A stretch of DNA of 64,000 nucleotides. Origin: Amoebophrya sp. A120 (taxonomy: Eukaryota; Protista; Dinoflagellata). Where the stretch lies: NCBI GenBank assembly GCA_905178155.1, contig CAJINV010000005.1, positions 8,893,318-8,957,317 of the forward strand. Direction: 5' to 3'. Positions 1,266-46,643 of the stretch are shown here, one piece after another. Both the position numbers and the translations under genes were made by a program. The stretch's first letter is position 1; every line of letters begins with the position of its first letter. Under the pieces are notes generated by a model, which made no database searches, was not told the DNA's origin, and saw only the letters and a list, made by a program, of their open reading frames with translations.

Positions 1266-1518
1266 TATGCATTACAAATGTCTCTGGGTCTGGAAAAATG
1301 CTGCTGGAACTTGTCATGCTAAGTCTGGACCGTACGAAGACCTGTGCTGCATAATTACCACTAAAAGTCGGTTTTTGACCACGGCCAGAGGAAGCTTCTC
1401 ACGCACATGATAGGCATGATAGCGACCTCACAGAATCTGTAGCATCATGGGTCGGTCATGGAAAACCCGCATGGCAAACTTTTGATTCTTCCAGTCCCAG
1501 ACATATTTGCACTTCATA
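1266..1518. mobile_element. Introner/MITE family A (degenerate DR)
   Basis: TIRs tatgcattacaaatgtctctgggtctggaa ... ttccagtcccagacatatttgcacttcata; flanks TCTCC/TTTCG. Confidence 0.8.
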
Positions 1519-3187: not shown

Positions 3188-3418
3188 TATCAAATGCAAA
3201 TATGTCTGCGTCTGGAAAAGTGGAACTTGTCATGCGTGTCTTGCAACCCGAGAAAATCTGTGTTGCGTCAACAGCAGAAGGGCAGCTTCCTTTGTCATGC
3301 TCATGCAACAAGAACGCAATGCTTAATGCGCAATAAACATCAAAAAGCTCGTGTTGCAATCTCACACAACAGCAAATCGGCATTACAAGTTTCCAGACCA
3401 AAACATTTGCACTGCATA
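3188..3418. mobile_element. Introner/MITE family A
   Basis: Family A TIRs; perfect 5-bp DR TCCTC. Confidence 0.9.
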
Positions 3419-3441
3419 TCCTCTGGTGCGGTATGGAGTGC

Positions 3442-3578
3442 TATCACGTGGGAAAAAGAAGTACCCACCCCAGAGACGCAGACGCGCGGCTGCTGCAACT
3501 TCTGGCTCTTGCAGCAGACGTCGAGACCTACAAGACATTAGACAGCTCTGGGGCGGTTTCATATTTTTACCTAGGATA
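3442..3578. mobile_element. Introner/MITE family B (short, degenerate)
   Basis: tatcacgtgggaaaaagaagtacccaccccagag ... ctctggggcggtttcatatttttacctaggata; DR AGTGC/GGCGC. Confidence 0.6.
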
Positions 3579-3623
3579 GGCGCAGAGCTGTCATCATCCT
3601 GGAGGTGTCTTCGTCCAATTCCT

Positions 3624-3707
3624 TATTCATTGTGAGGAAAAATCTCCCCTCCCCAGCAACACAAATTGTCTTTTGACTATGGGATGGGGGCTTTTTTCAC
3701 TTTGATA
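3624..3707. mobile_element. Introner/MITE family C (84 bp, internally deleted)
   Basis: gaggaaaaatctcccctcccc ... gggatgggggcttttttcactttgata; perfect DR TTCCT. Confidence 0.75.
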
Positions 3708-4058
3708 TTCCTATTTCCTCCACCTTCATCCGCGCAAAGCCACGGCTCTCTCACAAGAGTGTGGAGATCTTTCTGTAGCATAAAAAAATGCGTAGTTCAA
3801 TTTCCACGTCGAAGATGACAAGATCAAGAAAACAGCTCCTCGCTTTTTTGAGTATGGAATGCAAGAAAAAAACCGTCCATGGTCAAGATTTGCAAATCAT
3901 TTTAGTTCTCGAGGAAAAATTCCTTCAGCAGGTGCAGGGCGTATTTTTCTGTTCGAGGAATCGATGTGCGTCATGGAAATATAAGAACGGCGAGAATCAT
4001 CATCAAGTCACAAACCCCCATGCATCACAACTGGCATTTTCGCAAACAGAAACACCCT

Positions 4059-4323
4059 TATCAAATGTAAAAATGTCTGGGTCTGGAAGAATGCGCGATT
4101 TGTCATGCAGCTTTTCCATGCATGAGGTCTGGTTCTGGAATGCAGGACCTAGCATGACAGATTGTGGGCGATCTCTCTCATGCCTTTCCTGCATGAGAAA
4201 CTCCCTCGCGACTTGGTCAAAACTAGACGACTTTTGGCAATCATGCAACACAGATTTTTGCATGCTTCAGATTTAGCATGAGAAGTTCCATTCTTCCAGA
4301 CCCAGACATTTTTACATTTGATA
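4059..4323. mobile_element. Introner/MITE family A
   Basis: Near-perfect ~33-bp TIRs; perfect DR ACCCT. Confidence 0.92.
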
Positions 4324-4352
4324 ACCCTGGAGTTGGAGCAAAAGTAAGTACT

Positions 4353-4540
4353 TATAAAGTGCAAATGCGTCTGGGTCTGGAAAGCTGTTCTTGAGCTGTA
4401 GTGCGTTGTAACCCGGATGAGAGTTCGCGTATTTGCATGACAAATTCCCTACTCTGCATATACAGACTTCAGGAGTATGGTGCGCATTCAAGAATCCGAA
4501 TGTTACAGTCTTCCAGATCTAGACATATTTGCAATACCTA
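4353..4540. mobile_element. Introner/MITE family A (degenerate)
   Basis: tataaagtgcaaatgcgtctgggtctggaa ... ttccagatctagacatatttgcaataccta; DR not recognisable. Confidence 0.65.
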
Positions 4541-4944
4541 AAGTTCAAACCTACTCGTTTGGGCCAAGGATGGGTCATTTTCTCAGATACTGCTTTCCGT
4601 AGTCGTAGGCGTCTTTCGCATCTCGCATTATTTGCAGTACGTCAATAGGTCCTGGTCCTGCGCAATATGGGCATGCAAACTCTTCTTGGTGTGAAAAAGT
4701 GGAAGCAAGCTTCTTTGTCATGTGCGGTGGGCGGTTGAATTTATTTGTGTAATAAATTTACAAAAGTACTCATAATCTCGGATATGTCATGCAAGCATAG
4801 CAAAGTGAGTAAGTAAAAAACACTACCTGCAAACGTACACTCCATGCATGCCCCACTGACCTTCCTCAAGAGCCTTTTGCATCACAATCCAACGAGAACG
4901 AGTAGCGCAACTGCATGAGTCGACTGTTGTCTGCATCCAAGAAA

Positions 4945-5219
4945 TATCAAATGCGAATAAGCCTGGGTTTGGAAGATTGCAAGACTTGTCATGCAGGTTT
5001 TCCATGGCTCTGGTTCTGGAATGCGGTACCTAGCATAACAAACTGCTCAGTGAGATCCTTACTATGCCTATCGTGAATGAGAAGCTCCCTCTTAACTTGG
5101 TCAAAGCCGCAAACTGGACAGCTTTTGGTAATCATGCATCACAGATTTTGCTCTGCATAATCCAGACGAAGCATGACAAGTTGGAACACGTCCAGACCCA
5201 GACATATTTGCACTGGAAA
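4945..5219. mobile_element. Introner/MITE family A (degenerate)
   Basis: Family A TIRs; interior similar to 4059-4323; DR AGAAA/AGAGA. Confidence 0.75.
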
Positions 5220-5802
5220 AGAGAGTCGTGGCGTTGGAGTGTAGAGCTCTGCGCTCGATAGGGACTCGTGTTGACGCAGGAGCGTATCATGTTCATGTTG
5301 CAGAAAATGAAAAAGAAATATGCTTTGGCGTCCTCCTACTAGAAATCACAGGAAGCAAAATTTATCATGCCGTATCTTCACGAAAATTGTTTGGCGTCGT
5401 TCATCACACTCTGCGTGTACTTTCGCATTCTTACAGCCACGCTACAAAAAGAAAAACAAAAAGCGTTTTTGCATCACAGAAGAAAAAGCGAACGCCAAAG
5501 CTGGGCGACGGATAGGCGGTCGCGGTTCATCGTCCTACGCAGAAGCGAGCACCTTTCCGTACAGGAAAATCAGTATCCTGTATCAAAAAGCTTGAGTCAG
5601 TCACTTCGTACACCTCATGTCCACAAAAATGCACTAAACAAGGGCGGACGTTCCTACTCCTAGAAGATGTCTTTCGATACAAAATAAACGCAACACGACA
5701 CGCCCCCTACTCAGAAATGCAAAACGTCCTTACCTCGAGCTTTTCTCAGGATACGGAAAACAAACGCGACGGAACCGAAGGCAATAAGCACTCTTCCTGG
5801 AA

Positions 5803-8632
5803 TATCAAAAGAAAAAATCCCCCCTCCGCATGTTAAAGTGGAAACCCTTAATGCGGCATTAGTGTACACAAATTTGTCTTGCAGTAGGGGACTGCACGAA
5901 GCAGATACTAAGCCTAAGCTCGGGTCTTGTAGTGCAGGCCCTTAGCATGGCAGAAGTCCGCCCTGCAGGTCTTACAGCATTGCAAATCGCCCGCATACCG
6001 TGGCGGAGTCTACTCTGGATTTTCCTTCATGCAAGACAGACAGGATTTGTGGTCTTCCCACATCGACACTCATCTGATGATGATGATGTTGGCAGTGTGC
6101 CCCTTAAGCGGACTGCTGCTTGCTACTCCCTCCTCCAGCCCGAGAGCAGCTGAACGCCGATCTTCTATGACGAACAGTTGATCTATACCTTAGGGGCGCG
6201 GCTGTTATGAGGCTAGGTTTTTTCGGACTTGGGTGTGGGCCACACTCACTCACACGTCGTTCAGGGGGGACCAAACACGCACACACTGTAGCATTTCTGC
6301 ATGGGTGTAGGGCGAATCTGATCAGCAACCGAGCCGGGGCTATGAGCCTTGTTTTTTAGGTCCGGCGCGGAGAGTACTTAAACTCCACAACGGCTCGGTC
6401 ACTGTAGCTCGAGCACCGGACCCACTGCGTATGCCATGACGCAGCGCATACATGAACGACGTCCCACCGTCAGTGATTACTTCTAGACGAGCCTTGCCAG
6501 AAGAAGCACGCACCGACCTCCCAATCCGGCACATGGATCCTTTCCCTGCTAAGTTTTTGATTGTAAAGTGAGACCAGGGAACGCCCCCCGGGGACGGCGC
6601 GACTCACCTGCCTACCTGCGCACTAGCGCCTAGCGCTATCGAGCGGCCCCCAAATCGTCGCCATTCGCCATTCGAGCTAAAGCAAGAGGGGGGGCGGGTG
6701 CTCCATACAAAGATACATGTAAAAGGTTACGCTTTTGCCACGCACGCGCCCACGCCGTGGGATCGTGCTTCATGCAACATGTGGCAGCTTCGCTCACTCA
6801 AGGATACCCGTAAGCACGCGGAAGTAGCTGGTGACGGCGCAGACAAGGAGAAACCTGGCGGCAAGGTCCCCCCTTGCGCCAGGGAGGAAATTGAGACGAG
6901 TAGGGGAAACGGGCGCGCCATGTGCGACAGCGCGCATTTTTTTTTTTTTTTTTTCGCTCCTGGGCCTTGCCCTTTGGGTTTTTCTCCTTCCCTCGTTCTT
7001 GGCGAACAGTGAGAACAACAGCGCCCGGCTGTTCGTTGGTCCCTGCCTTGTAGCTCCAGCTCAGGCGTTCTTTTTCTCTTTGAGTTTTTTCGTGTGTCGC
7101 GTCCTTTTTTACAGGCGAAGAAGAAGTAGTGCTTTTTCGTAAGAAGAAGCAATCCTCTTGGTTGTTTCGGAAGAGACGTTTTTTCGAAGTGGAAGAAGTA
7201 GTTATTGAAGTAGCTTGCTCTAGAATAGCGACTTCCATGGTCCCCGTCTGAACTTCGACCCTGGTGAGTCGCGGAACATCGACCCTGGAATCCTTCTGGG
7301 ACCCTCTTCCCGGCTCTCCTGCGTTTCTTGTGCTGCTTGCTGCTCCGGGGCTGGGTCGTTTCCTGGTGTTGCAGGCTCCGGGCTTCGGAGCTCACCCCAG
7401 TCCCCTGAGTTGCTCCGTGCTCGTTTGCGGCTTTTCCCAGTCCCTTTCGCACCTGGGGGCTGCGAGCTCGAGGACGATGAGCTGGATGCGCTAGGAGGAT
7501 CCCCCTCTACTAGCCTGCTGAGGTATTTAGCGATCGCGTCCTCGTCGAGGCAGTCCCAGCCTAGTGGATGATATGCGTTCTTCATCGGCTGGTCTTTTCC
7601 GTTGGCCTGGTGCGCCTGCTCTTGCGCAGGGGGGCCCCCGCTTGCCTGTGCGCCGTGTGCGGCCGCTTCGCCCTGGTTTTGCGATTGTTCCTGCTCGCCT
7701 AGCAGTGCTGCCGTGAGGAATTCCGTTCGCTCGCGTCTGCTCATTTCCGGCCACTGTTGCACTGGTTCGAATTTGAAGGCATCCTCACCGTAGTCAAACA
7801 CGGGCCAGTCAGCGTAACAGTCGTGGTCTGCTACATTCACTACTGTTAGCCCAGTGGAGATCGTGGGAGGCGCTTTGGCTGTCACCCACGATCTGTCTTC
7901 GTCCGCGTCATGCCTACACTGCTTGATTACCACGTGGCCGAGCTTTTGCAACGCTTCGACTCTTTCTACCAGTGCGAGGACTATTCCTAAGCCCCTGCGC
8001 AATGGACCGCGTGTCTTGATCCAGAGCTTGCGGTAGTCCTCTAGCCGGAAGCACACGCTGGCTGTTTGTGGCCAGGATGCTATAGCGTCCATAAGCACTA
8101 TCGCATTGTTGCAATATGCCGCGAAGCGCTGCGCTTCTTCTCTTTCCTCTGTTCCTAGGTGCGCGTCGCTGGTCTTAGCCGCTAGAACCGGAATACCTTT
8201 ACCCATTTTCTCCATTTCGCAAGCTACTGTCGTGCCTATGTCGGTGTGGGCGAAGATAGAGACTGTCTTCGTGGTGCGTGCTTTCGCTTTTGGGTCGACA
8301 AGCTCCGAACGGTCTGGAACTATACCGCATGCGCGTAAGTCGGAAGAGCTTGGCAGGCGCGTGCTCGCCCCGTCGACAAGTGCTGTGGCCAGCGCTAGGT
8401 CCGCCCGGCGTCGGTTTTCGATCGCTGTAGTGTCTGCGTCGTTGACTCCAGCGAGGCCTTCGCCCAAAATACGCACCGGGAAAGTCGCCCATCTAACCAG
8501 TCCATCCATATCCGTAAGGATGTTCTTTTGGGAGAGTCCTCTCAGGATCTTCATCTGCAAGGATGTATATAAATTAAATTTTCAGAAGGATGCACTTTCG
8601 ATAGGGAGGGGGGGGAATTTTTCCATACGATA
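5803..8632. mobile_element. Family C TIR ends enclosing ~2.7 kb cargo
   Basis: 5803-5884 and 8555-8632 match the two ~80-bp ends of the family C element at 11150-11471 (inverted orientation). Flanks TGGAA/CCCTA do not match. Confidence 0.6.
7220..8560 (-). CDS. 446-aa intronless ORF, possibly a 5'-truncated retroelement C-terminus (weak RNase H-like motifs)
   Basis: The ORF opens directly at the TIR-derived end with a non-ATG start and carries no introners. It has IVLMDAIASW and LVERVEALQKLGHVVIKQCRHD motifs. An 18-nt poly(A) lies on the minus strand at 6937-6954, ~265 bp after the stop. Confidence 0.45.
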   Translation of the reverse strand: MQMKILRGLSQKNILTDMDGLVRWATFPVRILGEGLAGVNDADTTAIENRRRADLALATALVDGASTRLPSSSDLRACGIVPDRSELVDPKAKARTTKTVSIFAHTDIGTTVACEMEKMGKGIPVLAAKTSDAHLGTEEREEAQRFAAYCNNAIVLMDAIASWPQTASVCFRLEDYRKLWIKTRGPLRRGLGIVLALVERVEALQKLGHVVIKQCRHDADEDRSWVTAKAPPTISTGLTVVNVADHDCYADWPVFDYGEDAFKFEPVQQWPEMSRRERTEFLTAALLGEQEQSQNQGEAAAHGAQASGGPPAQEQAHQANGKDQPMKNAYHPLGWDCLDEDAIAKYLSRLVEGDPPSASSSSSSSSQPPGAKGTGKSRKRARSNSGDWGELRSPEPATPGNDPAPEQQAAQETQESREEGPRRIPGSMFRDSPGSKFRRGPWKSLF

Positions 8633-31209: not shown

Positions 31210-34200
31210 TCAAGTTGTACTTTTTTTCGTGGATCTCCGCTTCTTGCCCGCCGGCTCGCTTGTGGTTTCCTTCGAAGTATTCGATGTCCCCGCGGTGAGA
31301 TTCTCCTTTTCCTTCGACGCATTTCTCGTCCGTTTCGACGACGTGTTTTTCTTGGCAGCACCCATTCCCGCGTTGATGCGCGTATTTTGCACCAAGAACC
31401 CGTCCTCCTCCTCCTCTTCCTCTTCCATGTTGTTCTCGTCAATCGTCGGCAGTGCCAGCGCCTGCCGCGCATTCCGCCGTTTCGCCGCAGGCGTGGCTTT
31501 TCTTGGTGGTTCGTTTTTACTGCAATTATTTCCAAGCGCATTTTTCTTCGCTGTTGGCGTGAGTGGTGCGATGTCCTCTAGCAATTCCTGGGATGCGTTA
31601 CTATGCTCCAAATTTGGCGTGAACCCGGTGTTCTTCCCGGAGGTGAGGGACGCGATCTTGTTGAAATTCAATTGCGGGGACGTCGGTCGAAGAACTAACA
31701 ACTCCCGACTGTTGTTGACCACGGAAAAATTGCTGTTTTGGGAGAATTCCGACGGCGATTCGGCGAAGGGGTTGGATTTTGTGCTGTTGTAGGGATAGTT
31801 GTTGTTATCGGAAGAGGACCCGGAGGAGTCGTTTTGACCACTACTTCCCGTCACCTTATTCGTCAACTTCTGCCACAAACTCGGCTTAGAACCGTTCTTG
31901 TATATTCCCGTTGTTCCGCTGGAAGAGCTGCTGGACGCTCCTCCTGCTGCGCTCTGCCCTCCCGCCGCGCTCATCGAGGCCATAGGGGAAATCCGGGAAA
32001 ACAGACTACCCATCACCCCGCCTGCTGAACTGGAACTCGACCCGCTAGTTGTGCTCCCGTTCCCCGGTCCCGCTGGGTTGACGTGGTTCGGTAAATTGTC
32101 TAAGACCGAAGTGTATGCACTGCAAAAGTATCGTAGACTAGTTCTAGTATAAATCGCATGACAAATTTCCTCACCATGATGACACATGAAATTTGCAATG
32201 CGGGTTTGACTTGAGAAGGAAATTTGTAATGCATGATTGTGATTCTTAGTACTAGTACGACACTTTTGCAATGCATAAAGTATCTGGTTCGCCGGAGAAG
32301 GATTGGAGCAGCCCAAGCGCGTCTTCACTTATCGACTTGGAATGCTTGTTCAGAAACGGATTCACGCCCGCCAACGTCCCCGACCCGGACACTCGTTGTT
32401 CTATCCTGTGTAAAAACATCCCCACCCCAGAGTTGTCATGCAGATTTGCAATGACAGAACCATTTGTGATGCGCATCCCCATGATAGGCATTGCCGATCG
32501 TGTTTTGGAACTTGTAATGCTGTAAACAGGATAAGCCGATGGATTTGTAATGCGACTTCCCTTGCTAAACTGCACTACGCTAGAGCCTTCGACCTGTAAT
32601 GCATGATTCCAAAACCTTCGAGGTTTGTGTTGCAAAATCCCCATCTTGACTCTGGGGTGCGGACGTTTTTCTTCAGGATATGCTCCTGCAGCATCTTCAC
32701 CGTCTCCTCGTCTTCCTTCTTCGATTGCAGTGTCAGTTCAAACAGGTGCTCGCGGATTTTCATGCCACGTTCGGCTTCCGTTTCCAGTTTGGAAATGTCC
32801 TCCAAAAACGTTTCCGTGACGGTTTTCTGGTTCATCTTTTTCGGCATGTGGATCTTGCCCGCCAGCTTGCACACCCGGGAATTCTTCAGCACGTCCGCGA
32901 GTTCCTGGGCGGTTATTCGTTCCGCGGGGTAAAATTGGAGGCATTTTTTGATGATATCCTCGAGTAAAAACTGCTTCATGCTGCTGTCCCACGGGCCCTG
33001 TTGCGGCATCTTGCCATGGTGGGGCTGATCGCTGTTGTCCAGCTCCTATGAAAGTGCACAATTTCCCCTCCCCCTTTTTGTCATGCAAAACCCCCAATCC
33101 ACTGTGTTCCTCTTGGCACTCTGTGCATGGCAAGTTCTGGTAGCCCAAATAGCACTACACTCTAGTGTAAATTTGTCATGCAGAACCGGCATTCTTGCTG
33201 ATGCTTGTATTGCCGCTCATGCTTTACAAATGAGGGGGAGGGGGAGTTGTGCACTGTCATAGTTCCCCCGAGTCCGCGATGTTGCTGCTATCAGCAAACA
33301 GCTGGTCCGGGCTAGAATATGCATTGCAAATATCTCTGCGTCTGGAAACTTGTGATGCGAGTCAGTCAAGAATAAGTGCACTGTAAAGCACCGCTAAGCA
33401 TGACAAGTTTTTTCGTGTTTCTGTGCTGCGTATTCCGCATGAGAAATGTCGTTTTTGCATGACAGACAAGAGGAGGTCTTCGTGGCCACGCAATACAGAG
33501 TTCTGAGTCATGCCAAACTAGCATGAGAAGTCTCGCAATCTTCCAGACCCAGACATATTTGCATTCGATATAGAAGCGGCGTCGTCGATGTTGGAAACGG
33601 AGGAGTTAGTGAGGGACTGTTTTTTGTCGTTTCTCGTGGTGGACTTGCTGCTCTGTTTATTCGTCTTCTCGTTCGCAGGCGCACAGAGGTTGTCCAGCTG
33701 CTTCTCCAACGCCACCCACTTCTTTTTCACCCAACTCGCCTCCTGCGTCGCCAACTGCTGGATGTTGTGCACGCCGTAGGTGATTCTTTTCCGGCCGAGT
33801 TTCGTCTTAAACGCCGTTCGGTTTATCGAGTACTGTCTCGCGAGGATCAAGTGATACGGGTTGGTTTCCGCGAACATCGAGCTCGACTCGTTGTTGCACA
33901 CCAGCATCTCGTAGAACACGCACCCCAGCGCCCAGATGTCGACGGGGAAGGAGTAGGACTCCGTGGTTTCCATGATGAGTTCCGGTGCCAGGTAGGACTT
34001 GGTCGAGCACTCCCGTCCCCCCGTCATGTGCTTCTTCGTCGACCTGGCCATGCCCAAGTCCGCGATGATGGCGTTTTGGTTCTTCGCATCGTAAAAAATG
34101 TTTTCCCGCTTGATGTCGCGGTGGAGGACCTGATAATTTTTATTTTTTTTTTAAAAATACAAATCACAAAAATAACGCAGCGAAATATCACATAGACAAC

Positions 34201-37200
34201 TTCAGATCGGAAAAGGAAATGATCCAGGCTCGTCGTCCTTGTTCTATCGCGGCATCGTATTCGTGGTTCGTAAGTGCCATCTGACCCCTTCGCCTTTCGG
34301 CTCCAGACTGCTTGCCCCTTCTCGTCGCGACATGCTACAGTTGTTCACATGGTCAGCAGGCGGTGAGTCACACCACCGAGTTGCCTTCAATCTCGCTGTG
34401 CAAGAGAGTCGACAACTGTAGTGATGCAACAGCACAGGCGCTGCATTGCTCTTCCTTTTTTCGGTGGTGATTCTGTACCTGATCCGAGTGGCCCACTGCC
34501 CCGCCCCTCACGCCTAAAAAACTAAGCCTAAAGGTCGGGAAATCTCGAATCACAATTGCGTGAGTTTTGAAGAAGCAACTTTTGGGATCCTGTTTTGCCA
34601 TGACATGCATGACTGGGCGCAGCGCGATGTTGATGGTCCTACTGGGCTCTTTTTGGAAGAATTGCTACAGGAGGAAGGCAGAGAAGGGGGTAGTTGCTGA
34701 CTTGTATTTTCACTTCGAGTCCGGCTCGAAAAAGTAAACGCATGATGAGAATATTCAGAAACTACCCCCAAGCAAGCCCTCTGAGATGCACGGCTGCGCT
34801 TTTTACGTAGCAGCAAGCCTTTCCCCTTCCCCCTGCAGTATGCTTCTTTGTTGCTTTTTAATTCTTGTCAAAAATGCTCTTTGGTATTGTCGGCGTGGGT
34901 TTGGAGACAGTGTGGCAGCGTGACTCCTGAGACCTTAGAGGGGTGAGGCAACATCAACCCTCCTACACAGTCGAGCATGAGTGAGAACTTCAACACCGCA
35001 GCAACTCAAGGAAGGGAGCAGAAGCCGGGCGAAGAAATTCACACCCGAACTTTAGGTCTCCTGTTTTTTTTTTTTGAAAAAATGTTTTCCCGCTTGATGT
35101 CGCGGTGGAGGACCTGATAAAAATTTGCATGATTTGTTTTAAAATGCGTGCGCCGTTTTTTCTGGTAAAGTGAAAGTAATATGAGGTCTCTGTAATGCGA
35201 AAATGAGGTTGAGAAATCACGACCTGTCATGCATAAGAGTCTGTCCAACAAAAGCCGAGACGTTACCCAGGTAACGTCGACGAAATTATGCATGCATGCC
35301 CACCCACCCCCCCGTTACTCGGCCCACGCCAAGAGGGAATTCATATAGTCGAGTAGCAGCGCGGGTAGGCGGTGTACGGCTCGGCCCCACCAATGCAAAA
35401 CGCTGACAAACAATCGCTGCGCGCCCTGTCGTGTGGCAGGCGCTATTCTGTTCGGGCCAGGCCAATATTGATACGCGCTGCGAATTCCTTTTCGTATCGG
35501 GCGCACGAAGCGCGACACCAAAAAAATTTGGCGCGCTGCGCGCGCTTTCGTATTTCCCTGCCCTGCCGCTGCGTTGCGGGTGGCGCAAGTTTTTACTCAA
35601 GTGGCGCCGCGCGTCGGAGGCTGTGCAATTTTTCACTTCGCGCTGCGCGCGCCGTCACGTTTTCAATTCCCTTGCGGGCGATGCGGCTCTGCTGCAATTT
35701 CTCAGCACAAAAGGGGGGCTTCCTGACTTGCCCCTGCGCGAGCCCGCGCCGCGCGCCCTCATATTAGTTAGCTTCGCCGCGAGGCGCAGCAGGGCGAGCC
35801 CCCCTCGCCCCAGTTCCTTTCGAATATTTTCCACGCGCTGCGCGCGCCCTCGTAAAAAATGTTTTCCCGCTTGATGTCGCGGTGGAGGACCTGATAATTT
35901 ATTTGGGACGTCCAAGGAATCAAGTTGGTCAAATTGTTGGAATCAAGTTGGTCACTGGAATCAAGTTAAATGGACTCAAGTTGGATCCTGGAATCAAGTT
36001 GACTGGAATCAAGTTGGGTCCTGGAATCCCGTTGCGTGGAATCAAGTTGATCCCGGGAATCCCGTTACGTGAAATCGCGTTGCGTGTCCCGTTTCCGCCA
36101 GAAGCAAAAGCACTGCGCGGGTCCCGTTACTTCCGCTGCCAAACGTTATTCACCATGCACGCGCGTGGCGAAAGCTCTCATAGATGCATGCGCGGTGGGT
36201 AAAGATCTCAGAGATCCCCCCGGGGCGGCAGGCATCTGCTCCCCCGAAGCGAAAGAAATTGCAGCCCTGCCGGCACCAACGAGCGGAATTGAATTCCTGG
36301 CTTCATCACGGAGGACAAAACCCCGGGTCTCCCCAGAAGGGAAAGTTCCACGCTTCGGGACCCCCGCCTACCTTTACCGAAGGCCGGCCCGCCTTCCGAC
36401 GGGCCATACATGTTCCGGGCCCCCGGGGCCGGCGTGGATGTGACGAGGCCCGGGGATACAAAAGAAAAAACCTGGGCCGGGCCCCCGGCGCAAAAGCTGT
36501 AAGTATACGCACGCAGCCCAAACGGCAACTTTGCGCGCTTCGAAACCGAATCCCAAACGCCTCGGCGAGCCCGGGCACAGAAAAACCCCGAACAACCCAC
36601 GTCGCGCAGGAGGTGTAAATAAGCTCGGGCCATTCAATCCCGAGAGCCAATCAAGCTGCGGACCTTCCGCCGGGGAGCGACCCGCCAGAGCTTCCGAAGG
36701 CGAGACATCCGGGGCTGCCGAAGCCAAAGAAGCTTCGGAGCCTCCGAAGGTGAAAGCTTCGGCGCTTCCGAAGCTAAACGCCCCGGATCCCCCCAAGGCG
36801 ATGAAGCGGGCGAAGTTGGCAAATGCCAAACACCTGAGGCAAAGCCTCGGCCCCTTAGTGCTGCAGGCGGAATAAACCCCGGACATCGGGAAGACAAGAC
36901 GGAACTCCCTGAGAGGAGAACCGTGCCAATCCCCAAAGAGACCTTCCGAAAGAGGCGAAATAGAATCCCCGGAGAGAACTGCCGAAGGACAAGGAAGGCG
37001 AAATGGAGGCCCCCGAGACACCTTCCACAGGAGGGCGAAATGGAGTCCCCTGAGACCGCAGGAACGCGAAACGGAATCCCCCGAGACTGACAGACACCAT
37101 CCCGAGGAAGGCGAAGTGGAAACAGAATCCCGAAAGCAATGCCATTGCCTTCCCTCGCAAGATCCATCCGTCCCTCTCAATGGGTCTCCCGAGAGGAGGC

Positions 37201-40200
37201 GAAACGGGCATGGAACTCCGAGAGGAACGGATGGATCTTCCGAGGGAAGGCGAAATGAAGACGGAATCCCCAGAGACACACACCTTCCGAACGCAGGAGA
37301 CACAAATGGAATCTCGGGAACTTCGGAAGGCGAAAGCCCCGACAACTTTCGAAAGAGGGCCGTAAAACAACCTGGGCGCGCAAAGCTTAGCTCTAACATT
37401 ATTTGCCACTTCTCTATCGACCAGAGGAAGAAAAGCCATACATGTTTGATAATCGTGGCCGCGTTTGAAAAAAAAAAATATTTTCCCGCTTGATGTCGCG
37501 GTGGAGGACCTGATAATTCGCATGATTTGTTTTCAAATGCGGGCGTCGTTCTTGTGGTAAAGTGAAAGCACTATGAGGCTCTTTGTCATGCGAAAATGAG
37601 GTTGTGAAATCAACTGGCGTCATGCATAATTATAATAATAGTGAAACGACTTTGCCCTCCCCCTTTGCTATAATCTATAGGAGGCACTTAGAAAAATAAT
37701 TCTAAACGAATGTGCTTAGAAGGTCTCGTCTAGAAGCTTCGCGTAACAGATTGAACGCGTTCCCGTTATCTGTACCCCGTACCGTCGTGCAAAATGTTAC
37801 GCTGCACGCTCTGGCGAGCAGCAGAGCAAAGCCACGCATCAACTTCAGTGTGATTTTGCTAGAGAAAGCGTGAAAATGATGGCCAAGAGCTCCCTGGCCA
37901 TCCCCTTGCCTTCGCTCGGGCAAAAGTTTTCCAAGGGGGGCATGCCCAGTCTGTCAGGCAAAAGCGGCGGCCGCGAGCTCCGGGGCCAAAAGCATCACTT
38001 ACCGGCCGGGCAAAATTGATGGCCAAAAGCCCCTCCTGGGCCATCACTTTCCGGTCGGGCAGAGTGATCCCTGGCCGTCCCTTTCCGGCCGGCAAAAGTG
38101 ATGGCCAAAAATTCCACGGCCAGCCACCAACTTTCGCTCGGGCAAAAGTGATGGCCAAGAAGAGCTCCCTGGCCATCGCTTTTGGCCATCACTTCCCGGT
38201 CGGGCAAAAGAAAGTGATGGCAGAGAGGCCCTTGGCCATCACTTCCCGGGCGGGCAAAAGCGACGGCACGGCCAGGACCTCCTTGGCCATGCATGTGTCG
38301 GTCGCTTTTCGCTCGGGCAAAAGTGTTTCCGGTTCGTCGGGCGAAAGTGATGGCCTGGAGCCACTTGGCCATCACTCTGCACGGGCAAAAGTGATGGCCG
38401 ATAGCTCCCCGGCCGCCACTTTTCGCTCGGACGGACAGCCGGGCAGCCAGGCAAAGTGATGGCCAGGAGCCCCTTGGATGGGTGGCCATCACTTTCGGCG
38501 GCTATCATTTTCGTTCCGATCGGGCAAAAGTGACGGGCAGAAGTTCCTCGGCCATCAGCATCGCCGTCCGATCGGTTCGGGCAAGTGAAAAAGTGGCGGC
38601 CGATAAAAAATGTTTTCCCGCTTGATGTCGCGGTGGAGGACCTGATAATTTGCATGATTTTCTGTAAAATGCGTGCAAAGTGAAAGTACTTGAGGTTCTT
38701 TGTCATGCGAAAATGAGGTTGTGAATAAATCAACTGCCATGCATAGAGTTACAATGTATATTACCTTGTGCCGGTGCATCCACAGCAGCCCAGACACGCA
38801 ATCCCGCATAATCGAGCAGAACTGTTTTTCGTTCCGAATAATGCCCATCATGTCAATCGACCCCGGTGTGTAAAGCGGCATCACGATGTAAAAGCACTTT
38901 AGATTCTTCTTCAGTGCCTCCTGCGTCTTCGAGTTGATCGGCTTCAATTGCTGTTCTACTTTATCCGCCGCTGTGACCGCGGGGGATTTCATTTTACTCT
39001 TCTTGTTGTTCCCCTCTTCTGTTATTTTCGCCTGCTTGCTGGGTTTTGAAATAACGGGCTGATCCTCCTCCTCCTCTCTTGCAATCTCGATGTTTATCAT
39101 TTGTAAAAACGTCCCCACTCCAGAGTCAAGATGGGGATTTTGCAACACAAACCTTAAAGTTTTGGGAGCCACGCATGACAAGTTGCAGGCTGTGATATAA
39201 TGCAGTTTAGCAAGAGAAGCCGCATAAGAAATCCAGCTCCTTATCCTGTTCACAGCATTACAAGTTCCAAAACACGATGGGAAATGCCTCTCGTGGGGAT
39301 GCGCATTACAAATGCTCAGCTCTTGTGCTTGCAGATCTGCATGACAACTCTGGGCTGGGGATGTTTTTGCACAGGATAATGTTCTGCGCCTCTTTGTTCA
39401 TGTAGATGGACACAATGGGCGTGATGTTTGGGTGCGGAAGGTGCTTCATGAAGTGGATCTCGCGGAGCAGGCGGATGTTGTCCTCCCAGTCGTTATCGAA
39501 CGCTTTTTCATGCGGGAGGGAGACCTGATAGAGTTCATTAGACGAATTTGTGAAGCAAATATCCTCGTATGTGAGGACTTCCCAGCAGTCCAACTTCCAC
39601 AAAAGTCGCTTTATGCATGCTCAAACCCGCCAGTTCTGCCTCAGTTCTCATCTGCAGCACAAACAAAACACTATACCTTCTTCACCGCGATCTGGTCGCA
39701 GCCATGGTACCGCTTCGGGTTTAACACTCGGCACTTACACACCACCCCGTATCCTCCTTCCGATAAATACTGTGCCCGGTCCGTTTCCGGTGGCACCTCG
39801 AAGTATCAAATGTAAAAGTGTCTGGCTCTGGAAGATTCTGACACTTGTCATGCACGTTTTGCATGAGCCATGATGTCTGTGATGCATACCATAGCAATAC
39901 AGATTTTTTGAGGACTTCTTGATGCCTATTCCGAATGACAAATGCCTTCTCAGCGTAGCAAAAATTGCATTCCCTTTGGTACTCATGCAATACAGATTTT
40001 TCTGGAATCCCAATGCAGCATCACAAGTTCGGATTCTTCCAGACCCAGACATTTTTACATTTGATACGAAGGTAGCGCCGTTGAGGATGGCTTCGTGGCA
40101 GGCGAGGGAGGAGCTGACGGGGTTCAATTTTTCGTCCACCACACCCGCGGCAATGGCGTTTTATGGTGAGCAAAGACGTCCTCCCCCCAGAGTCAAGATC

Positions 40201-40501
40201 GGAAACCTGCTAGACAAATCGCCAGGCTTTGGCTGTTGCGCATGACAAAATTGGGCTCGCAGTGTAGTCGTGCTTAGCTAGTGCAGCAGCATCACAGATC
40301 TAGCATACTACGCGAATTTGAGCATCACAAATCTCAAAACACCAATAGCAACTGCTTCTCCTGGGTTTCTGCATGAGAAACATTTTGAGCATGCAGGTTT
40401 GCATTACAACTCTGGGGCGGGGACGTTTTTACAAATGATACGTTGCCGAGGATCTTTTTCAACGCGTCCTTGTCCAGATGATCGAGCAACGAGGACATCA
40501 T
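31210..40501 (-). CDS. Ser/Thr protein kinase, CMGC/MAPK-like (~910 aa, 10 exons)
   Basis: Exons 40441-40501, 40067-40156, 39677-39798, 39379-39524, 38765-39089, 33571-34129, 33262-33312, 32681-33041, 32278-32396 and 31210-32108 total 2733 nt in one frame. Motifs: SEGGYGVV, IAVKK, LLREI..HPNI, HRDIKREN, DLG, YLAPE, DIWALGCVFYEM, DIIKKCLQFYPAERITAQEL. Confidence 0.88.
32114..32277. mobile_element. Introner family D
   Basis: D TIRs; DR AAGTG/AAGTA; in frame. Confidence 0.9.
32402..32680. mobile_element. Introner family B
   Basis: B TIRs; DR TGTTC/TGCTC; in frame. Confidence 0.92.
33047..33261. mobile_element. Introner family E
   Basis: tatgaaagtgcacaatttcccctccccc ... ggggagggggagttgtgcactgtcata; DR GCTCC/GTTCC; in frame. 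Confidence 0.92.
33318..33570. mobile_element. Introner family A
   Basis: A TIRs; perfect DR TAGAA; in frame. Confidence 0.93.
35915..36070. repeat. Short-unit tandem repeat (ggaatcaagtt)
   Basis: ggaatcaagttg recurs at 15-21 bp spacing. Confidence 0.85.
36890..37360. repeat. Degenerate tandem repeat (gaaggcgaaatgga..tccccgagac..ccttcc)
   Basis: Recurrent ggcgaaa / atcccc / ttccga motifs. Confidence 0.7.
37870..38600. repeat. Palindromic tandem repeat (ggcaaaagtgatggcc...ggccatcacttt)
   Basis: Multiple units with gtgatggcc/ggccatcac inverted pairs. Confidence 0.85.
39095..39378. mobile_element. Introner family B
   Basis: B TIRs; perfect DR ATGTT; in frame. Confidence 0.93.
39525..39676 (-). 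other. Canonical GT-AG intron (kinase)
   Basis: AAG|gtatag ... tatcag|GTC joins IAVKK-VSLPHEKAF. Confidence 0.85.
39804..40066. mobile_element. Introner family A
   Basis: A TIRs; perfect DR CGAAG; in frame just before the Gly-rich loop. Confidence 0.94.
40162..40440. mobile_element. Introner family B
   Basis: B TIRs; DR CGTTT/CGTTG; in frame. Confidence 0.9.
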
Positions 40502-43500
40502 CTTTGACGAGTTTAGAAGATTTTATATTTGTCGCTTTATCTTTTTCAAAAGGGTATTAATTTTCTAAAACTAAGTATAACGCTCTCGATTCTTATTGCT
40601 GGTGCTGTCCTGCTAGAAGAACAAGAAGTTGCTGTACGTATTGGTGATATAGACGGACGCTCTTGCCGCGTGGGTGCGTAAAAATGCGTGTAGAAATGAT
40701 TCGTCGCGGCGGAATGGGATTGAGTACTATGTCTATGAGGACCTGTAGTTGCAGTGTTTCAAGAAAGCTGCTATCACTATCGCTATCAACGACAGGAGGG
40801 CTACAACAGTAAATACGACGGCGACGCGGCAGAAGTGGCCTGACGATGCAAGAACTAGCTGTCTTTTGGCTTCTTTACTCTTTGACAACTCTACTCCCTG
40901 CTCCTGATGGAAACTGTTTGTTCTCCTGTGTCGCTAATTTGTCATGCTAATATGCAGAAGTACTGACTGAGAAGGTGGAAGAAACCTATATCTATAAAGA
41001 ACTACGCTACTAAAACCGGAACAAGCTTTACGACTTCAAATTGCTATCAATGACTATCGTTCGCCACCATTGACCTGACTGGGATTGGAAAATAGCATTT
41101 TCTAGCTACGAAAAATCTGCATAGTACGAGTATAATGTTGTAGACACAATTTGATAGTGGCGTGAACGTGAAGAGAACAGATGAGCCAACCATTTATGAT
41201 AGCCGCGAGGTCAACATGAGAAATTGTGCTGCTACAAAGCTGCTGCACTACACCGACTTTCAGATGTTTTCTCTTTGATTTTTTCGCACAACATGATTAG
41301 TGATCGCCATTTTGCGGCAGGGTCGATTTGCTGATCCAGTGATTTATCTGACTTTGATGCTTTCAGCTCACAAGCTTTTGCACAAAGAAAATCTTCCGAC
41401 TGTAACTGTGATTGGCACTACAGGACAAGAATGGCACTTTTTCTCGCACAAGAATTTTTCCTTCTCCATCTTGTAGTTGACGACGTCGTACGACTTTGTC
41501 GTGCCAGTGAATCCACACGACTTCGTGCCAATTCGCTCGAAAGCAGTCCCACAACGTCCGATGTCTATTTTGATTTCCACACAAGAATCAATATTGCCCG
41601 AGTTTGTCGTCCACAAAGAAGACTTGGATAAAAGAACAAGAACGCGGCAAAGTACGCAACACACGACAACAAGCGTGCACACAACACTTGCGCAGCAATA
41701 GCATTTCAATCACGCGCACGCCATTACTCCTGCACAACACGATGTTGCACTAACTGTGAGAAGACAAATCGAAGAACTAAAGAGCTTTCTTCATTGTCAT
41801 CTAAAAAAACAAAATTGAGCAGACATTTTTGAAGACGCATTTTTGTCTCATTGAAAAGAACTTTGCAGAGAGGAGCAGAGCACTAGCGCACGTCAGCTCT
41901 TTTTCCCCCCACCAGCGGTTCCCTCTCCCTCTTTTTCTGCGAGGGCCGCTAGGGAGGTCGAGTGGTTTTGATTTTTCATCCATTTTTCCCGTGCGGCATT
42001 ACCGTTTGCTTGCAGGAAGTGAAATTCTTTTGAGAAAAAAGTACAGTATGGTCCGCGTGTCGGCGAGGGGGCGTATGTACCTCTAGACCACTCCTGCATA
42101 TCTGTAGTTTTCGACGTTGTGTTCATACTTACTGCACCTAGGGTAGTTGTGCTTGTTCGGGTTGCGCTGTTTTCTCAAAAAATTTGAAGCCCCAAGAACT
42201 TCTTCACTGCAATTCATTAGTGCGATGGATTTAACAGTACTAAACCACTCTGAGGAAAGACAAAGAGATGTTCATTGTCATAGTGCACAATACGATACGA
42301 AATGATCGTGCTATATTTTTTTGCATTTGGGCGGGTTTTGAGATGTATGCAGATGAGTACGTAGGTCAGCATCAAACCCAGCTTCTTCTAAATTTTTATC
42401 TGTGGCACTTCAATAGTACTACACCTGTGTTCTCTAGACCAATGACAGCTCGATTTTTTTGTGGCGCCAGTCGAAGTACTTACTAGGACAACTGCGTGCA
42501 TCTACAGGTGTTTGTAGTAGCTCCTACTTCATGCTGATTCGGTAGTAGAACCAGCTACAAAACCCGACTCGGCTTCGAGTCGCCTGGACGAAAACGTGGA
42601 CTCTGGCTTATATACATCGTAGTTTCAGGAGGTTTGTATTCGTTTACGTTTTTTGTTTTTTCTATAGCCTCCTCATATTTTTGCAAAATCTCCGGCATTA
42701 TGCAAAACTTAACCACTAAATACTTTATTTTCTACCTGTTTTAAACTACCTGTAATTTGTTCTTGCGTCGAAGGTCCATGCGCTTTTTTTGTTCTTCGTG
42801 CTGTTGCAATTGAAGCCTCTAACTACTTATGTTGGGTTTTCATTGCAAAAGCAAAACCCGGGTCACAATCTGGTTGTTCTGCTATAAAGGTCCTATAGAA
42901 CTCTGAGAAAAGATGTGCATCGGCAAAAACCATTTTCTGCTGGTGCGGCATAGATAAAAAATGGGCAGTGAAAAGGGACTTAAAAAACCACTCGAGGTGC
43001 TTGTCGACTGTAAGAGGCCGCTATATTTCTGTGCTTGTTATGGCGGTAAAACATCTAACAGACAGGCTTCGAAACGAAAACTTCGAAGATTAGATGCACT
43101 CTGTCTAGTAGAACGCGCTACAGTAGTTGTTGCAAATTGGCTCTGTATTTTTAGCAAAACGACCTCCTACAGTGCGACAATATAGGTTCGGAGAAAGAGG
43201 GATAGTTCTAGTGGTCGAAAGTATAAGTAACAGGCCCTTCCCGCATGACAAAAGCAATCACTGGAAAAATGCGACTACTCCTGCACGACAGGAAGACTGA
43301 GGATAAAAAGAACTTCTTGCAGAGGACTTCTGAAGGAAGGAACTAAACTTCTCATGTGTAGTTTTTAGTATCTGCTGCTGTTGCTGTTCTATTTTGCCGG
43401 CTGCCAGCAATTTTCGGGAAAAAAAAATTTATCCTCCCGTATAGAGACAAGCAAACATGTGCTAAATTCCCAAATAAAAGACGAGTCATAGAGGAATTCT

Positions 43501-43713
43501 CTCCCCGCGGCTGGGGATGAAAACCCTGCTTTTGATGCAAAAGTAAAAGTTAAAAGTAAAGAAGTCGTGTCGCAGGATTGAGTATCGTATCGTCCCAAAT
43601 TTTTCCGTTTGTCGCTTTTTTCTTCGGCAGAAGATAACCTTTCTCCATGCTGTTATGCGCAGGAGACGAGCGGAGAAGATGTCACCTCCGGATCAACATT
43701 ATTCATTGTCGTC

Positions 43714-46643
43714 TTAATTCATGTTGTCCATTGCGTTCTTAATCTCCGGTCTCGCAAACATCTTCAACAGAGAATCTAGCAACTGCGACAGATTGCTGCA
43801 ATCGCACCACACCGGCTGCCCATCGTCGCCCGTTTCCTGGTGCTCTGCACCGGTTTCTAGTGTTGGTGAAGAATTCGAATGGTCGCACTCGTGAAAGTAG
43901 TACAGGAAAACCATGAGCCCCGCGCCCGCTGCCACGAAGGTCTGTTTTAATAGTACGATTTTTTTTTTGATGACGATTCAGAACCAGACACTAGATCGCG
44001 TCGCAACAAATGCATGACAACTTGTTCCACTTCAATAAACGACGAGTATGTTGCAACACTGTCATTTTGCTGCACTAGTAGCACTACTGCAGCAGCAAGC
44101 GAAGTTGAAAAATAAGTAATTGCAACCACCTATACCACGACCACCTTTTATAGCAACATGTTGAGAAACAAACAATCTCCATTCTCATATACCAAAAACT
44201 TCGCCGCCGCCTTGCTCGCGCTTTTCGCGGTGTCGCACTCAAACACTTCCGGCACAATTTCCGTTACTCCTACGTAGATCAACGTCCCGCACGCCAGAGC
44301 GTTCAAATACGGCCCAATAATTTGCATCTGCTCCTCCGCCACGTTGTGTGCCGCCGTGTAAATAATCACCCCGATCGGACTGCTGCAGGCGCAGAGGAAA
44401 TTCAACAAAAAGAATTTACACCCGTCGAAGTCCGCTTTCAACAGCGACAAAGACAACACAAACCCCTCCACCCACTTGTGCGCGGCTAACGCTACCACCG
44501 TCGCCATTCCGTTCGACCAGGGGTTCGTCCCCTTAAAGGTCGAAGCCGCTGCCCACCCCTCAAACACCCCGTGTAATGACAGCGCGAGCATGAGGAAAAC
44601 CGCGGACATGGTGCTTGCGCCGAGCGGAACTCCGTGTTGGTGCCCGTGGTTGTCGTGGCCGTGGCAACCGAGGTCCTCGTCGGAATGGTGGTGGTGCTCG
44701 TGAACGTAGTGGGAGTAATTGGATTTTCGCCTTTGCTGGGACAAAATGCTGTTTCTGGGGCTACCCCTTCCGTGGATGTAGTGGTTGCCTGAGGGAGCGT
44801 TGCTGATTATCAAATGCAAAAATGTCTGGGTCTGGAAGATTGCGAGACTTGTCATGCTAGTTTGGCATGACTAAAAAGTTTGTGATGCGTGTCCAAGAAG
44901 AGACCCTCTTGCCTGTGATGCAAAAACGCAGTTTGTCATGCGAAAAACGCAACACAAAGAAGCGCAGATATTTCTCATGCTTGGCTGTGCATTACAGAAC
45001 ATTCGCTATTCCCAACGCAGCATTACAAGTTTCCAGACCCAGACATTTTTACATTTGCTACTGATTCTTCCATGATTTTCTTTTGATTTTATCGCCGAAT
45101 CGTCAATCCCGACTTTGGACTTTTTACTTGCTGTCGACCGGTCGCTCATTCTACTAGACGGGTAAAGAAGATTATTGGGCGTGGCGAGTAAGTGTTGCGT
45201 CTGCTCATTGTGCAGCAAATGGTGGCCGCCCGGATGTCCGCTGGTCAGTTGGTTCTCGATATCCTCGGGGGCCTCTGGTTCGTCAAGGACTTTGATTTTG
45301 TCATCCTCTTCGTCACTGTGGTCGTGCTGGCAGCCATGGCTATGTGATCCGCAGTCGTGCCCGTGGCTGTCATGTGCACCAGATACTGCACCATGCTGAT
45401 GTCCGTGTCCGTGACTAACGTGATTATTTCCCTGTCCGTGCACGTGTGAGTGCCCGCACGTATGATCCTCGAAGTCCTCTCCATCCTCCAAACTATTTCC
45501 GTGCGCGTGACAGCCGCTGGCGTGATGATTATCAAATGCAAAAATGTCTGGGTCTGGAAGAGTGGAACTTGTCATGCAGATTTTCCATGACCCATGAGGT
45601 CTGGAATGCGGGACTTAGCATGACAGGCTCTGCGAGGTCTCTGCCATCCCTATCCTGCATGAGAAACTCCCTCCCAACTTGGTCGAAAGAGGACAGCGAC
45701 AGCTTTTGGCTCTCATGCAACACAGATTTTTGTATGCTTCAGACTTACCATGACAAATTACCACCTTCCAGACCCAGACATATTTGCAATGCATACTGAT
45801 GTTCTTTCGCGGGCGAGGATTTCGGGGTAAACCACAATGCGAACACCCGTTCGAAAAAGAGAATCAAGCTGTACCCGCCGAATAAAGTTACGCCCATCAA
45901 CTGCAACTTCCCCTCCAGTGCCTCCGTGTCGTCATGGGGAAGGGACATAAAGCCCGGTGGCGTGTTCGGGTCCCCGTGCGAATGGCCGTGGCCGTTACCG
46001 GCAGCAGCTCCGTGGCTGGTATTCCCAGTGTCCACCATCTGGGGGTTTATCTGCGGTCCGTACTCCCGAAAAAACCTCTCGTTGGGCTTGTGGTGTACGT
46101 GGCCGTCGTGTTCGAACTTTCTCAGATACAGACTTTTCCACTTCTCCGCAGAGGACTGCTGCACCGCGGTGAGCAAATCCATCACCACTTCCGGAATGAT
46201 GTGGAAGCAGGCCATGGCGAGGAACATCCCAGCCGCACCGACGTTGAAAAGGTCGAGGACGAAGAGGGAGATTCTGCCGCGGAGGATTTTCGCCAGATAG
46301 GACCCGAATAGAACGATGGAAATGAATATCGAATGCAAATATGTCTGGATGTCTGGAAACTTGTAATGTTGAATGGTCATGATGGCCTGTGCCTGTAAGT
46401 GCAGTGCAGCATGACAAATGTTTCAAACGCTTTCTCATGCGCAGAACGCATTACAAACTGCGGTTTTGCATGACGAAACAAGTGTGACGCTTTATAATTT
46501 GCTGCTTATGCAATACAGATTTTTTAGTAATGCAAAACATGCAATACAGGTTCAACCTTCCAGACCCAGGCATATGTGCACTCGATAATGAAGATCGAGA
46601 TGGTCGCCAAAGCGAACATCCACTGCTGCTGGTGGAAATCCAT
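43714..46643 (-). CDS. ZIP (SLC39/ZRT-IRT-like) zinc/iron transporter (~627 aa, 5 exons)
   Basis: Exons 46588-46643, 45796-46321, 45061-45524, 44193-44802 and 43714-43941 total 1884 nt. Motifs: NVGAAGMFLAMACFHIIPE, His-rich loops, LALSLHGVFEG, AHKWVEG, ACGTLIYVGVTEIVPE. GT-AG intron at 43942-44192. Confidence 0.92.
44808..45060. mobile_element. Introner family A
   Basis: A TIRs; perfect DR CTGAT; in frame. Confidence 0.94.
45530..45795. mobile_element. Introner family A
   Basis: A TIRs; DR ATGAT/CTGAT; in frame. Confidence 0.94.
46327..46587. mobile_element. Introner family A
   Basis: A TIRs; perfect DR ATGAA; in frame within TM1. Confidence 0.93.

Follow-up and report, generated by a model that had tools for sequence, protein, structure and literature searches.

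How does a gene deal with five splice acceptors that look alike, when its messenger RNA (mRNA) holds a single copy of the exon start that follows them? This question is raised by a protein kinase gene in a 64,000-nt stretch of the Amoebophrya sp. A120 genome (GCA_905178155.1, contig CAJINV010000005.1, positions 8,893,318 to 8,957,317), hereafter called the window. The five acceptors agree over 7 intron and 37 exon bases, and in the mRNA one copy of the 37-nt exon start, which we call the core, continues into exon sequence that is present only behind the last copy. Four inserts, named W, X, Y and Z, separate the copies. We consider it likely that the array arose by serial insertions of the LINE (long interspersed nuclear element) type, in which long target-site duplications would have carried the 3' splice site with them and turned hits in the exon into intron. 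In this way a gene could survive transposon hits in its catalytic exon, the insert becoming intron because the duplication copies the 3' splice site, and an intron of ~125 nt could grow to ~4.6 kb in a few steps. Such a process would add a mechanism to the debate on intron growth and spread in a lineage known for invasive intronic elements.

Five exon-start copies and four inserts

Coordinates are given in the plus-strand numbering of the window; the kinase gene itself lies on the minus strand. The first-pass annotation, made from the sequence alone, had reported that a splice acceptor and the HRD catalytic loop of a kinase were repeated five-fold. Indeed, a degenerate VLHRDIK pattern gave exactly five matches in the window and none in 100 dinucleotide-preserving shuffles, but all five are on the minus strand, so that the orientation first given to the locus had to be corrected. 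The core (GTCCTCC..CATTTTTT) corresponds to the first 37 nt of the HRD exon and is preceded by TTATCAG in each copy. These 44 nt are common to all five copies, with AAC to AAT in copy 4 as the sole substitution. The cores of copies 1 to 5 were located at 34093-34129, 35077-35113, 35854-35890, 37473-37509 and 38605-38641, and the TTATCAG motifs before them at 34130-34136, 35114-35120, 35891-35897, 37510-37516 and 38642-38648, respectively. The T-run is longer in copy 4, where it is extended at 37468-37472. As had been described, only copy 1 reads on into the kinase, through YDAKNQNAIIADLG (34129 downward), and copies 2-5 meet a stop codon 12-28 codons past the core. Copies 5, 4 and 2 also carry ~100 nt of intron, in which they differ from each other by 14-17% plus indels. 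A paralog or a repeat family as the source of the repeated unit was rejected after searches of the organism's own genome, made with the intron plus core and with the intron part of copy 2, matched this locus only.

In the direction of transcription, the array starts after the upstream kinase exon (38765-39094; ..CFYIVMPLY..LLWMHRHK), which is placed by its frame and GT donor, by an RNA-derived contig of the short-read run X3 and by its alignment to the related contig L068 described below. The resident GT..AG intron of 123 nt follows (38642-38764), the last ~100 nt of which form copy 5 of the duplicated intron part. Core 5 (38605-38641) is a decoy that runs into W and then into a stop; an AT filler (38603-38604) separates it from W (37626-38602). 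Copy 4 (37473-37625) consists of an intron part (37625-37510) beginning with (AT)GCATGAC, of TTATCAG and of the AAT variant of the core. After X (35906-37472) and a CAAAT filler (35901-35905) comes copy 3 (35854-35900), in which AAATTATCAG and the core make up the 47-nt target duplication of X. One A separates copy 3 from Y (35234-35852), which is followed by copy 2 (35077-35233), with an intron part from TGCATGAC, an acceptor with an extra TTT and the core. Finally, Z (34137-35076) leads to copy 1 (33571-34136), in which the TTATCAG acceptor is followed by the genuine exon, called exon F (VLHRDIKRENIFYDAKNQ..), which encodes the remainder of the kinase domain, starting with the catalytic loop. 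This layout resolves fully into four events of the form duplication, element, duplication, the duplications measuring 47 nt for X and Z and ~150 nt for W and Y. Taking out Z with 47 nt, X with 47 nt, Y with ~150 nt and W with ~150 nt restores the intron, the core and the exon.

Each spacer was searched against the source genome and then compared with other copies of its family. The inserts had first been called unrelated, but all four were recognisable as fragments of repeat families. They are 5'-truncated members of different dispersed families, with the family 3' end intact, and lie in the orientation of the gene. In each case the intact 3' end adjoins the left edge of a repeat copy and the truncated 5' end adjoins the T-run. 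W (977 nt) belongs to a non-coding family of ~3.6 kb with GGCCATCACTTTTGCCCG subrepeats; its intact 3' end is ..TATTATTATAATTAT, and four other copies of the family have the same terminus, ..ATAATTAT. It is 99% identical to two copies (C22 and C18) which extend >1.3 kb further 5'. X is a truncated copy of a 1.8-kb family with ends like terminal inverted repeats (TIR). It is cut at family position ~290, within the family's own T-run, and its 5' junction shows microhomology between this run and the T-run of the target; its 3' end ..CTTGATTCCTTGGACGTCC is intact, with a terminus ..GGACGTCC that is the same in four other copies. Y has one other genomic copy (C4:5646848, 91% identical), which extends further 5' and has the 3' end ..GGACAGACTCTTA (..ACTCTTA) in common with it, and the 5' junction of Y shows CGA microhomology.

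Z derives from a polyA retroposon of 1.29 kb, of which it retains the 3'-terminal ~930 nt and lacks ~355 nt at the 5' end; it ends in A10TAA beside the duplication. Its family has ~40 genomic matches, several of which, the best ones, are 98-99% identical; many are 5'-truncated with a common 3' end. The Z sequence is the 3' untranslated region (UTR) of a LINE with a 1337-aa open reading frame (L043:2071-6081) carrying Exo_endo_phos, the domain of apurinic/apyrimidinic endonucleases (APE), and the reverse transcriptase (RT) domain RVT_1. This partner was read at C3:8288500 (L043 and L044, G000:C3:8288500-8304400), where another RT-bearing element, whose open frame comprises 1839 aa, interrupts the Z-like 3' UTR of the LINE. 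At a second locus (L033, G000:C3:1183000-1192999), 5356 N at 3205-8560, which may be an assembly gap, stand directly upstream of a full-length Z-family copy. The genome holds >100 RT loci with long open frames. Known RNA families, such as the hammerhead found in Penelope-type elements, were also looked for in the inserts and none reached its gathering score. The 5' truncation, the intact 3' ends and the microhomology at the 5' junctions are the signature of target-primed reverse transcription.

The empty site and the transcripts

Fragments of the window occur in sequencing runs of marine plankton. With the 30-nt core we found a public contig, JACKZZ010023870.1 (L068), which aligns to window positions 31454-46163 at 84-95% identity. 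In this contig one core is directly followed by ACGATGCGAA.., the GT-AG intron is present, and W, X, Y and Z are all missing. L068 also does without all eight introns of the window that resemble miniature inverted-repeat transposable elements (MITE) in the aligned span, and retains both GT-AG introns; it is therefore genomic DNA of a close relative rather than cDNA. Having a single core and no inserts, it represents the orthologous empty site.

The first-pass annotation had left room for the locus being an untranscribed pseudogene. Exon F, however, appears in RNA-derived contigs, with depths of 104-144 on the exons that flank the array, and shows the marks of a gene in use. The exons were searched singly, so that the following profile match does not come from a joined protein model: exon F alone matches Pkinase PF00069 at profile positions 119-219 (E 1.5e-22). 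When we compared exon F with L068, 24 codons differed synonymously and only one nonsynonymously, a ratio that indicates purifying selection on the kinase.

One RNA-derived X3 contig extends over 39094-38763 and passes from there into the core; the joint (38639>38763) has GT..AG ends on the minus strand and a depth of 104. A second X3 contig, of 2.4 kb, starts inside the core at 34121, continues through exon F to 33571 at a depth of 144 and skips the MITE at 33570-33312. The absence of both the GT-AG intron and the MITE introns from these contigs shows that RNA was their source. The inserts W and Y reach a depth of only ~2-4.5 in them (3.7 for Y). Given this difference from the joins of upstream exon, core and exon F, the whole array, a pile of 4.5 kb, is absent from the mature mRNA.

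Direct splicing to copy 1 and stepwise removal by way of the other alike acceptors would leave the same product in these contigs. The sequence upstream of copy 1, which is the 3' end of Z, is the most U-rich, and this may favour copy 1. Among the raw reads of two RNA-seq runs of 2026 (X11 and X12), five partial reads aligned at the locus, too few to inform.

The first-pass annotation had also proposed decoy acceptors that yield truncated kinase. As regulatory decoys, the upstream acceptors might give such products, or transcripts targeted by nonsense-mediated decay, as a means of control. Four intact acceptors do lie upstream of the productive one, and an RNA contig at a depth of 4.5 runs from W into core 5. 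Nevertheless, this depth equals that of the plainly intronic Y and fits unspliced precursor, and the ortholog in L068 does without decoys. Set against the depth on the flanking exons, such products are at most a minor by-product, and we regard a regulatory role of this kind as very unlikely.

Target duplications and the probable growth of the array

We then compared the edges of the duplications. On the sense strand, all four insertions point to one nick, TTTTTT/A, which lies 37 nt inside the exon. On the antisense strand, X and Z point to a nick before AAATTATCAG, and W and Y to one before (AT)GCATG, within a microhomology ambiguity of 1-6 nt. The consensus nick of APE-type elements is 5'-TTTTT/AA, which the T6/A at the shared nick fits (PMC8565326). 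Copies with long duplications, for which a genome-wide search had been recommended, occur in the families of Z and X. Target duplications of other Z-family copies measure 9, 9, 11, 12, 15, 16, 17, 17, 33 and 77 nt, and in 8 of 9 the primer strand is T-ended; the 47 nt and the AATTT/G nick of the array would thus fall in the range of this family. Other copies of X have target duplications of 32 nt (L013), 54 nt (L014) and 44/47 nt (L017). Long duplications are normal for these elements. At two X-family junctions we also observed stutters between the terminus GGACGTCC and the duplication, namely CAAAT plus AAATTATCAG (window 35901-35905) and CATCAGC plus CCATCAGCC (L014, ~3024-3030); they look like restarted copying on the target.

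From these observations the following course can be proposed. The starting point would be a minus-strand kinase gene with a 123-150-nt GT-AG intron directly before the HRD catalytic-loop exon, which would have received at least four separate retroposon-type insertions by target-primed reverse transcription. Two antisense-strand nick positions, inside the intron or at its end, would have served: p1, immediately ahead of AAATTATCAG, and p2, immediately ahead of (AT)GCATG. The sense strand would be nicked 47 or ~150 nt further on, always at TTTTTT/A. Fill-in of the staggered ends would duplicate the stretch between the nicks, including the 3' splice site and the exon start. Since the downstream copy would retain the acceptor on an intact exon, the upstream copy and the element would simply join the intron, and an otherwise lethal exonic insertion would thus be neutral. 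Later insertions would reuse the nick positions in one or the other copy, giving the nested long-short-long-short pattern. Y, or a forerunner of W, would have come first, with X and Z after Y; the layout itself fixes only this last part of the order. Of the three options raised in the first-pass annotation, one had been repeated insertion at TTTTTT/A, each time restoring the exon through a target duplication of 50-160 bp. This option is right in essence, and the 5'-truncated, retroposon-type nature of the inserts and the empty site in the relative can be added to it. In the cases with a short duplication, the left edge lies 3-10 nt upstream of the exon. Left edges just past the acceptor are what survivorship predicts, long duplications being rare and those that barely reach the acceptor dominating among the survivors.

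The same design was found at other loci. L047 (C5:2048500-2058400) holds two further stacks, one with a repeat of 36-215 nt in four copies and one with a 47-nt repeat in three. In the first (L047 620-3146), four right-anchored copies of TTTCACGAG..GCTGTAGGT range from 36 to ~215 nt, and one single-nucleotide difference in their core tracks the nested pairing (1,2 versus 3,4). In the second (L047 3590-5893), the three 47-nt copies surround two inserts, an X copy whose intact 3' end abuts the repeat and a 1.17-kb element, a full-length member of another family, whose 5' junction carries an 18-nt patch including a 14-nt copy of the upstream target. At L017 (G000:C3:4196373-4200034, minus orientation, 1450-3041), a single X copy, truncated at family position 416, sits 44 nt into exon-like sequence. 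On either side of it stands an exact repeat of 44 nt (47 with CAG) that starts at the acceptor-like ..ctgcttttcag/GTCGATC, with an 18-nt AT-rich filler before the right-hand CAG. This locus is the one-insert version of the window array, in another gene, and represents the simplest form of such a rescue.

Several observations weigh against serial LINE-type insertions. Four hits at one sense-strand nick are far beyond chance and, falling on one nucleotide beside kilobases of neutral insert DNA, they mark a true hot spot. Nine other Z-family duplications show no T-run preference at the sense-nick end and the anchors of both L047 stacks are not T-runs, so that endonuclease specificity alone is insufficient to account for the anchoring. 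C12, the sole W-family copy with both flanks readable, shows no evident duplication. Only Z is tied to a LINE, whereas our searches revealed no partner with an RT for the other three inserts, W, X and Y; these also lack polyA, and X has TIR-like ends. Moreover, the ages of the parts are discordant, as detailed below, and the array is spanned by no long read.

The last point raises the question of an assembly or gap-filling artefact at a locus that is really single-copy, against which the first-pass annotation had advised a check. The published assembly ordered Illumina scaffolds on Nanopore contigs (PMC7789003). In addition, the depth of the X1 DNA contigs over copy 4 (37430-37628) is 2.8, compared with ~46 for single-copy sequence, and the junctions of copy 4 with W and with X lack independent support; the low depth is probably due to filtering of a short contig between two repeats. 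The check gave a partial result. X1 and X3 are independent short-read runs, whose contigs (k=31) break inside the repeat. An X1 contig (35638-35879) bridges the junction of Y with copy 3 and an X3 contig (38311-38633) that of W with copy 5, and the remaining junctions are unbridged. On the other hand, the copies are not identical, each having private substitutions and indels, every junction lies at a family 3' terminus with a correctly nesting target duplication, which an assembler would not create, and the design recurs at other loci. An artefact is thus scarcely credible.

As for the ages, W and Z look far younger than the duplications, both being ~99% identical to other members of their families. 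By contrast, the intron parts that flank W differ by ~10% in lineage-specific changes and by a 15-nt indel, which suggests that the present W is younger than the duplication that holds it. It is possible that an older W-family insert underwent ectopic conversion. It is also possible that an earlier insert was replaced by a later insertion, for which copy 5 would have been nicked at its anchor and copy 4 at its left site.

The discordant ages also bear on a quite different explanation, in which the array arose in one complex event. A break or nick at the T-run would have been repaired by a polymerase or RT that changed its template several times, from the RNA or cDNA of an element to the target and back, leaving at the T-run on each occasion and re-entering upstream, as in microhomology-mediated break-induced replication (MMBIR), fork stalling and template switching (FoSTeS) or RT template jumping. 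The copies share a single anchor position and vary in their left edges, the junctions show microhomology and short fillers or stutters, and the patch at the L047 insert contains upstream target sequence, all of which such an event would readily give. However, the three copies of the intron part have 2-5 private substitutions each, plus indels, as expected for duplications of differing age, and the identities of the four inserts to their nearest relatives vary widely (99, 99, 91 and 78%). Furthermore, all four inserts end exactly at family 3' termini, which DNA-templated switching would not produce. We consider a single complex event unlikely.

Returning to serial LINE-type insertion, we tentatively extend it to a general "target-regenerating" retroposition in this genome. 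Each duplication would hold both nick sites, so that every insertion would double the target and anchored stacks of unrelated elements would grow; those falling just inside exons would survive only if the duplication reaches the upstream acceptor. Nicks at the right-hand site of one copy and at the anchor of the preceding copy would swap the insert, and this cassette replacement would explain why W is younger than the duplication around it. This extension may well prove wrong; if true, introns would grow through target-regenerating stacks inside exons, by a route that has not been described before. Since anchored stacks recur elsewhere in the genome, they may reflect how the local retroposition machinery works.

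The first-pass annotation had further stressed the contrast between identical exon parts and diverged intron parts, and had proposed that recursive or repeat-guided splicing keeps all copies under selection. With L068 as the outgroup, we counted 5, 5 and 2 sites private to the intron parts of copies 5, 4 and 2; three sites are shared by copies 4 and 2, two by copies 5 and 4 and one by copies 5 and 2, besides several indels. A 15-nt block kept in L068, copy 4 and copy 2 is missing from copy 5. From these branch lengths ~5 changes were expected in the decoy cores and one was seen (Poisson P ~0.03); the contrast is thus weaker than it first looked, and strong selection on all five cores became less likely with these branch lengths. 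The window and L068 also agree throughout the first 15 codons of exon F, as may well happen by chance (P ~0.2). Hypermutation of the intron parts of the repeat-induced point mutation (RIP) or deaminase type was likewise set aside, since by eye the changes mix transitions, transversions and indels. No tree can accommodate both TGACAAAGA, shared by copies 5 and 4, and AAAACAAATC, shared by copies 4 and 2. Gene conversion among the copies is therefore likely, and conversion would suffice for the clean cores. Selection on all five copies is not required.

If the five copies were functional, splicing could be recursive at CAG/GTCCTC, or a non-canonical intron between core 5 and core 1 could be removed under the guidance of the repeats. 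The single change in the 44 nt of five copies argues for this, as does the fact that the core starts with GT, so that splicing to any copy regenerates AAG/GT. In this organism, non-canonical introns bordered by direct repeats make up >60% of the total, and a U1 snRNA (small nuclear RNA) was not found (PMC7789003). But the conservation excess is marginal, and the incompatible sites favour gene conversion as the simpler homogeniser. CAG/GTCCTC occurs at all five copies, and GTCCTC resembles neither GTAATA nor GTATAG, the two local donors. The array lacks the inverted repeats by which non-canonical introns of the organism are marked, and direct splicing to copy 1 yields the same mRNA. Selection for such splicing is therefore not needed to explain the array, and we find it distinctly unlikely.

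Relation to known systems and other introns of the gene

The first-pass annotation recognised no known system in the locus. In our analysis its parts are ordinary LINE-type target-primed insertions, and the unusual features are their stacking and the length of their duplications. A literature search for an acceptor duplicated by a target duplication gave no match, which is not proof of absence. In human L1, target duplications are mostly 7-20 nt long, and those of 47 and ~150 nt lie at the long end. The array resembles L1-type, APE-dependent retrotransposition (PMC8565326) in its 5' truncation, intact 3' ends, flanking duplications and 5'-junction microhomology, in the polyA of Z and its partner with APE and RT domains, in the T-ended primer strands and in the T6/A at the shared nick. 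It departs from it in that four families reuse three nick positions and three of them have neither polyA nor a known partner.

Introners and transposon-derived introns are known in Amoebophrya (PMC7789003), and those of A120 come from non-LTR (long terminal repeat), LTR and TIR elements (PMC12130899). As with these, mobile elements in coding sequence are removed from the RNA, a target duplication supplies splice-relevant sequence, and the organism type is the same. In an introner, a multi-copy element and its short duplication make up the whole intron and provide, or co-opt, both splice sites. Here, no new intron was made, but an existing GT-AG intron was enlarged by copying of its acceptor: the resident intron is the source of the donor and of every acceptor, and the inserts are internal passengers, truncated fragments without splice signals of their own. 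In the model of Rogers, introns are reportedly gained by tandem duplication of an exonic AGGT segment. There too the duplication of a splice signal lets the intervening sequence be spliced out with the protein unchanged, although in the array the duplication is a by-product of transposition and repeats an existing acceptor rather than making a donor and acceptor pair. Recursive splicing uses AG/GT ratchet sites, as in Drosophila Ubx. With CAG/GT at each copy, stepwise removal is formally possible in the array, but the donor thus regenerated is unlike the local ones. Site-specific LINEs such as R2 in ribosomal DNA, and integron-like cassette arrays, also show repeated insertion at one sequence with inserts separated by copies of a short site. 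In contrast, the elements found here come from several families and entered an ordinary single-copy gene, and the repeats are target duplications, not recombination sites.

Both GT-AG introns of the kinase gene (39524-39676 and 38642-38764) are bordered by AAG/GTA ... TATCAG/GTC. AGGT is thus a 4-nt direct repeat across each of them, as published for part of the canonical Amoebophrya introns. Non-GT-AG introns with 3-5-nt direct repeats and inverted repeats are abundant. We observed inverted-repeat elements of the form TAT..ATA at 32402-32680, 33047-33260, 33318-33570, 39095-39378, 39804-40066, 40161-40440, 44809-45060 and 45525-45804. They lack GT-AG, have 4-5-nt target duplications (aacg, cttcg, aacat, ttcta) and interrupt the kinase gene and its neighbours. 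At least six of these MITE introns lie within the kinase gene, and RNA-derived contigs show the exact removal of the elements at 39095-39378 and ~33312-33570.

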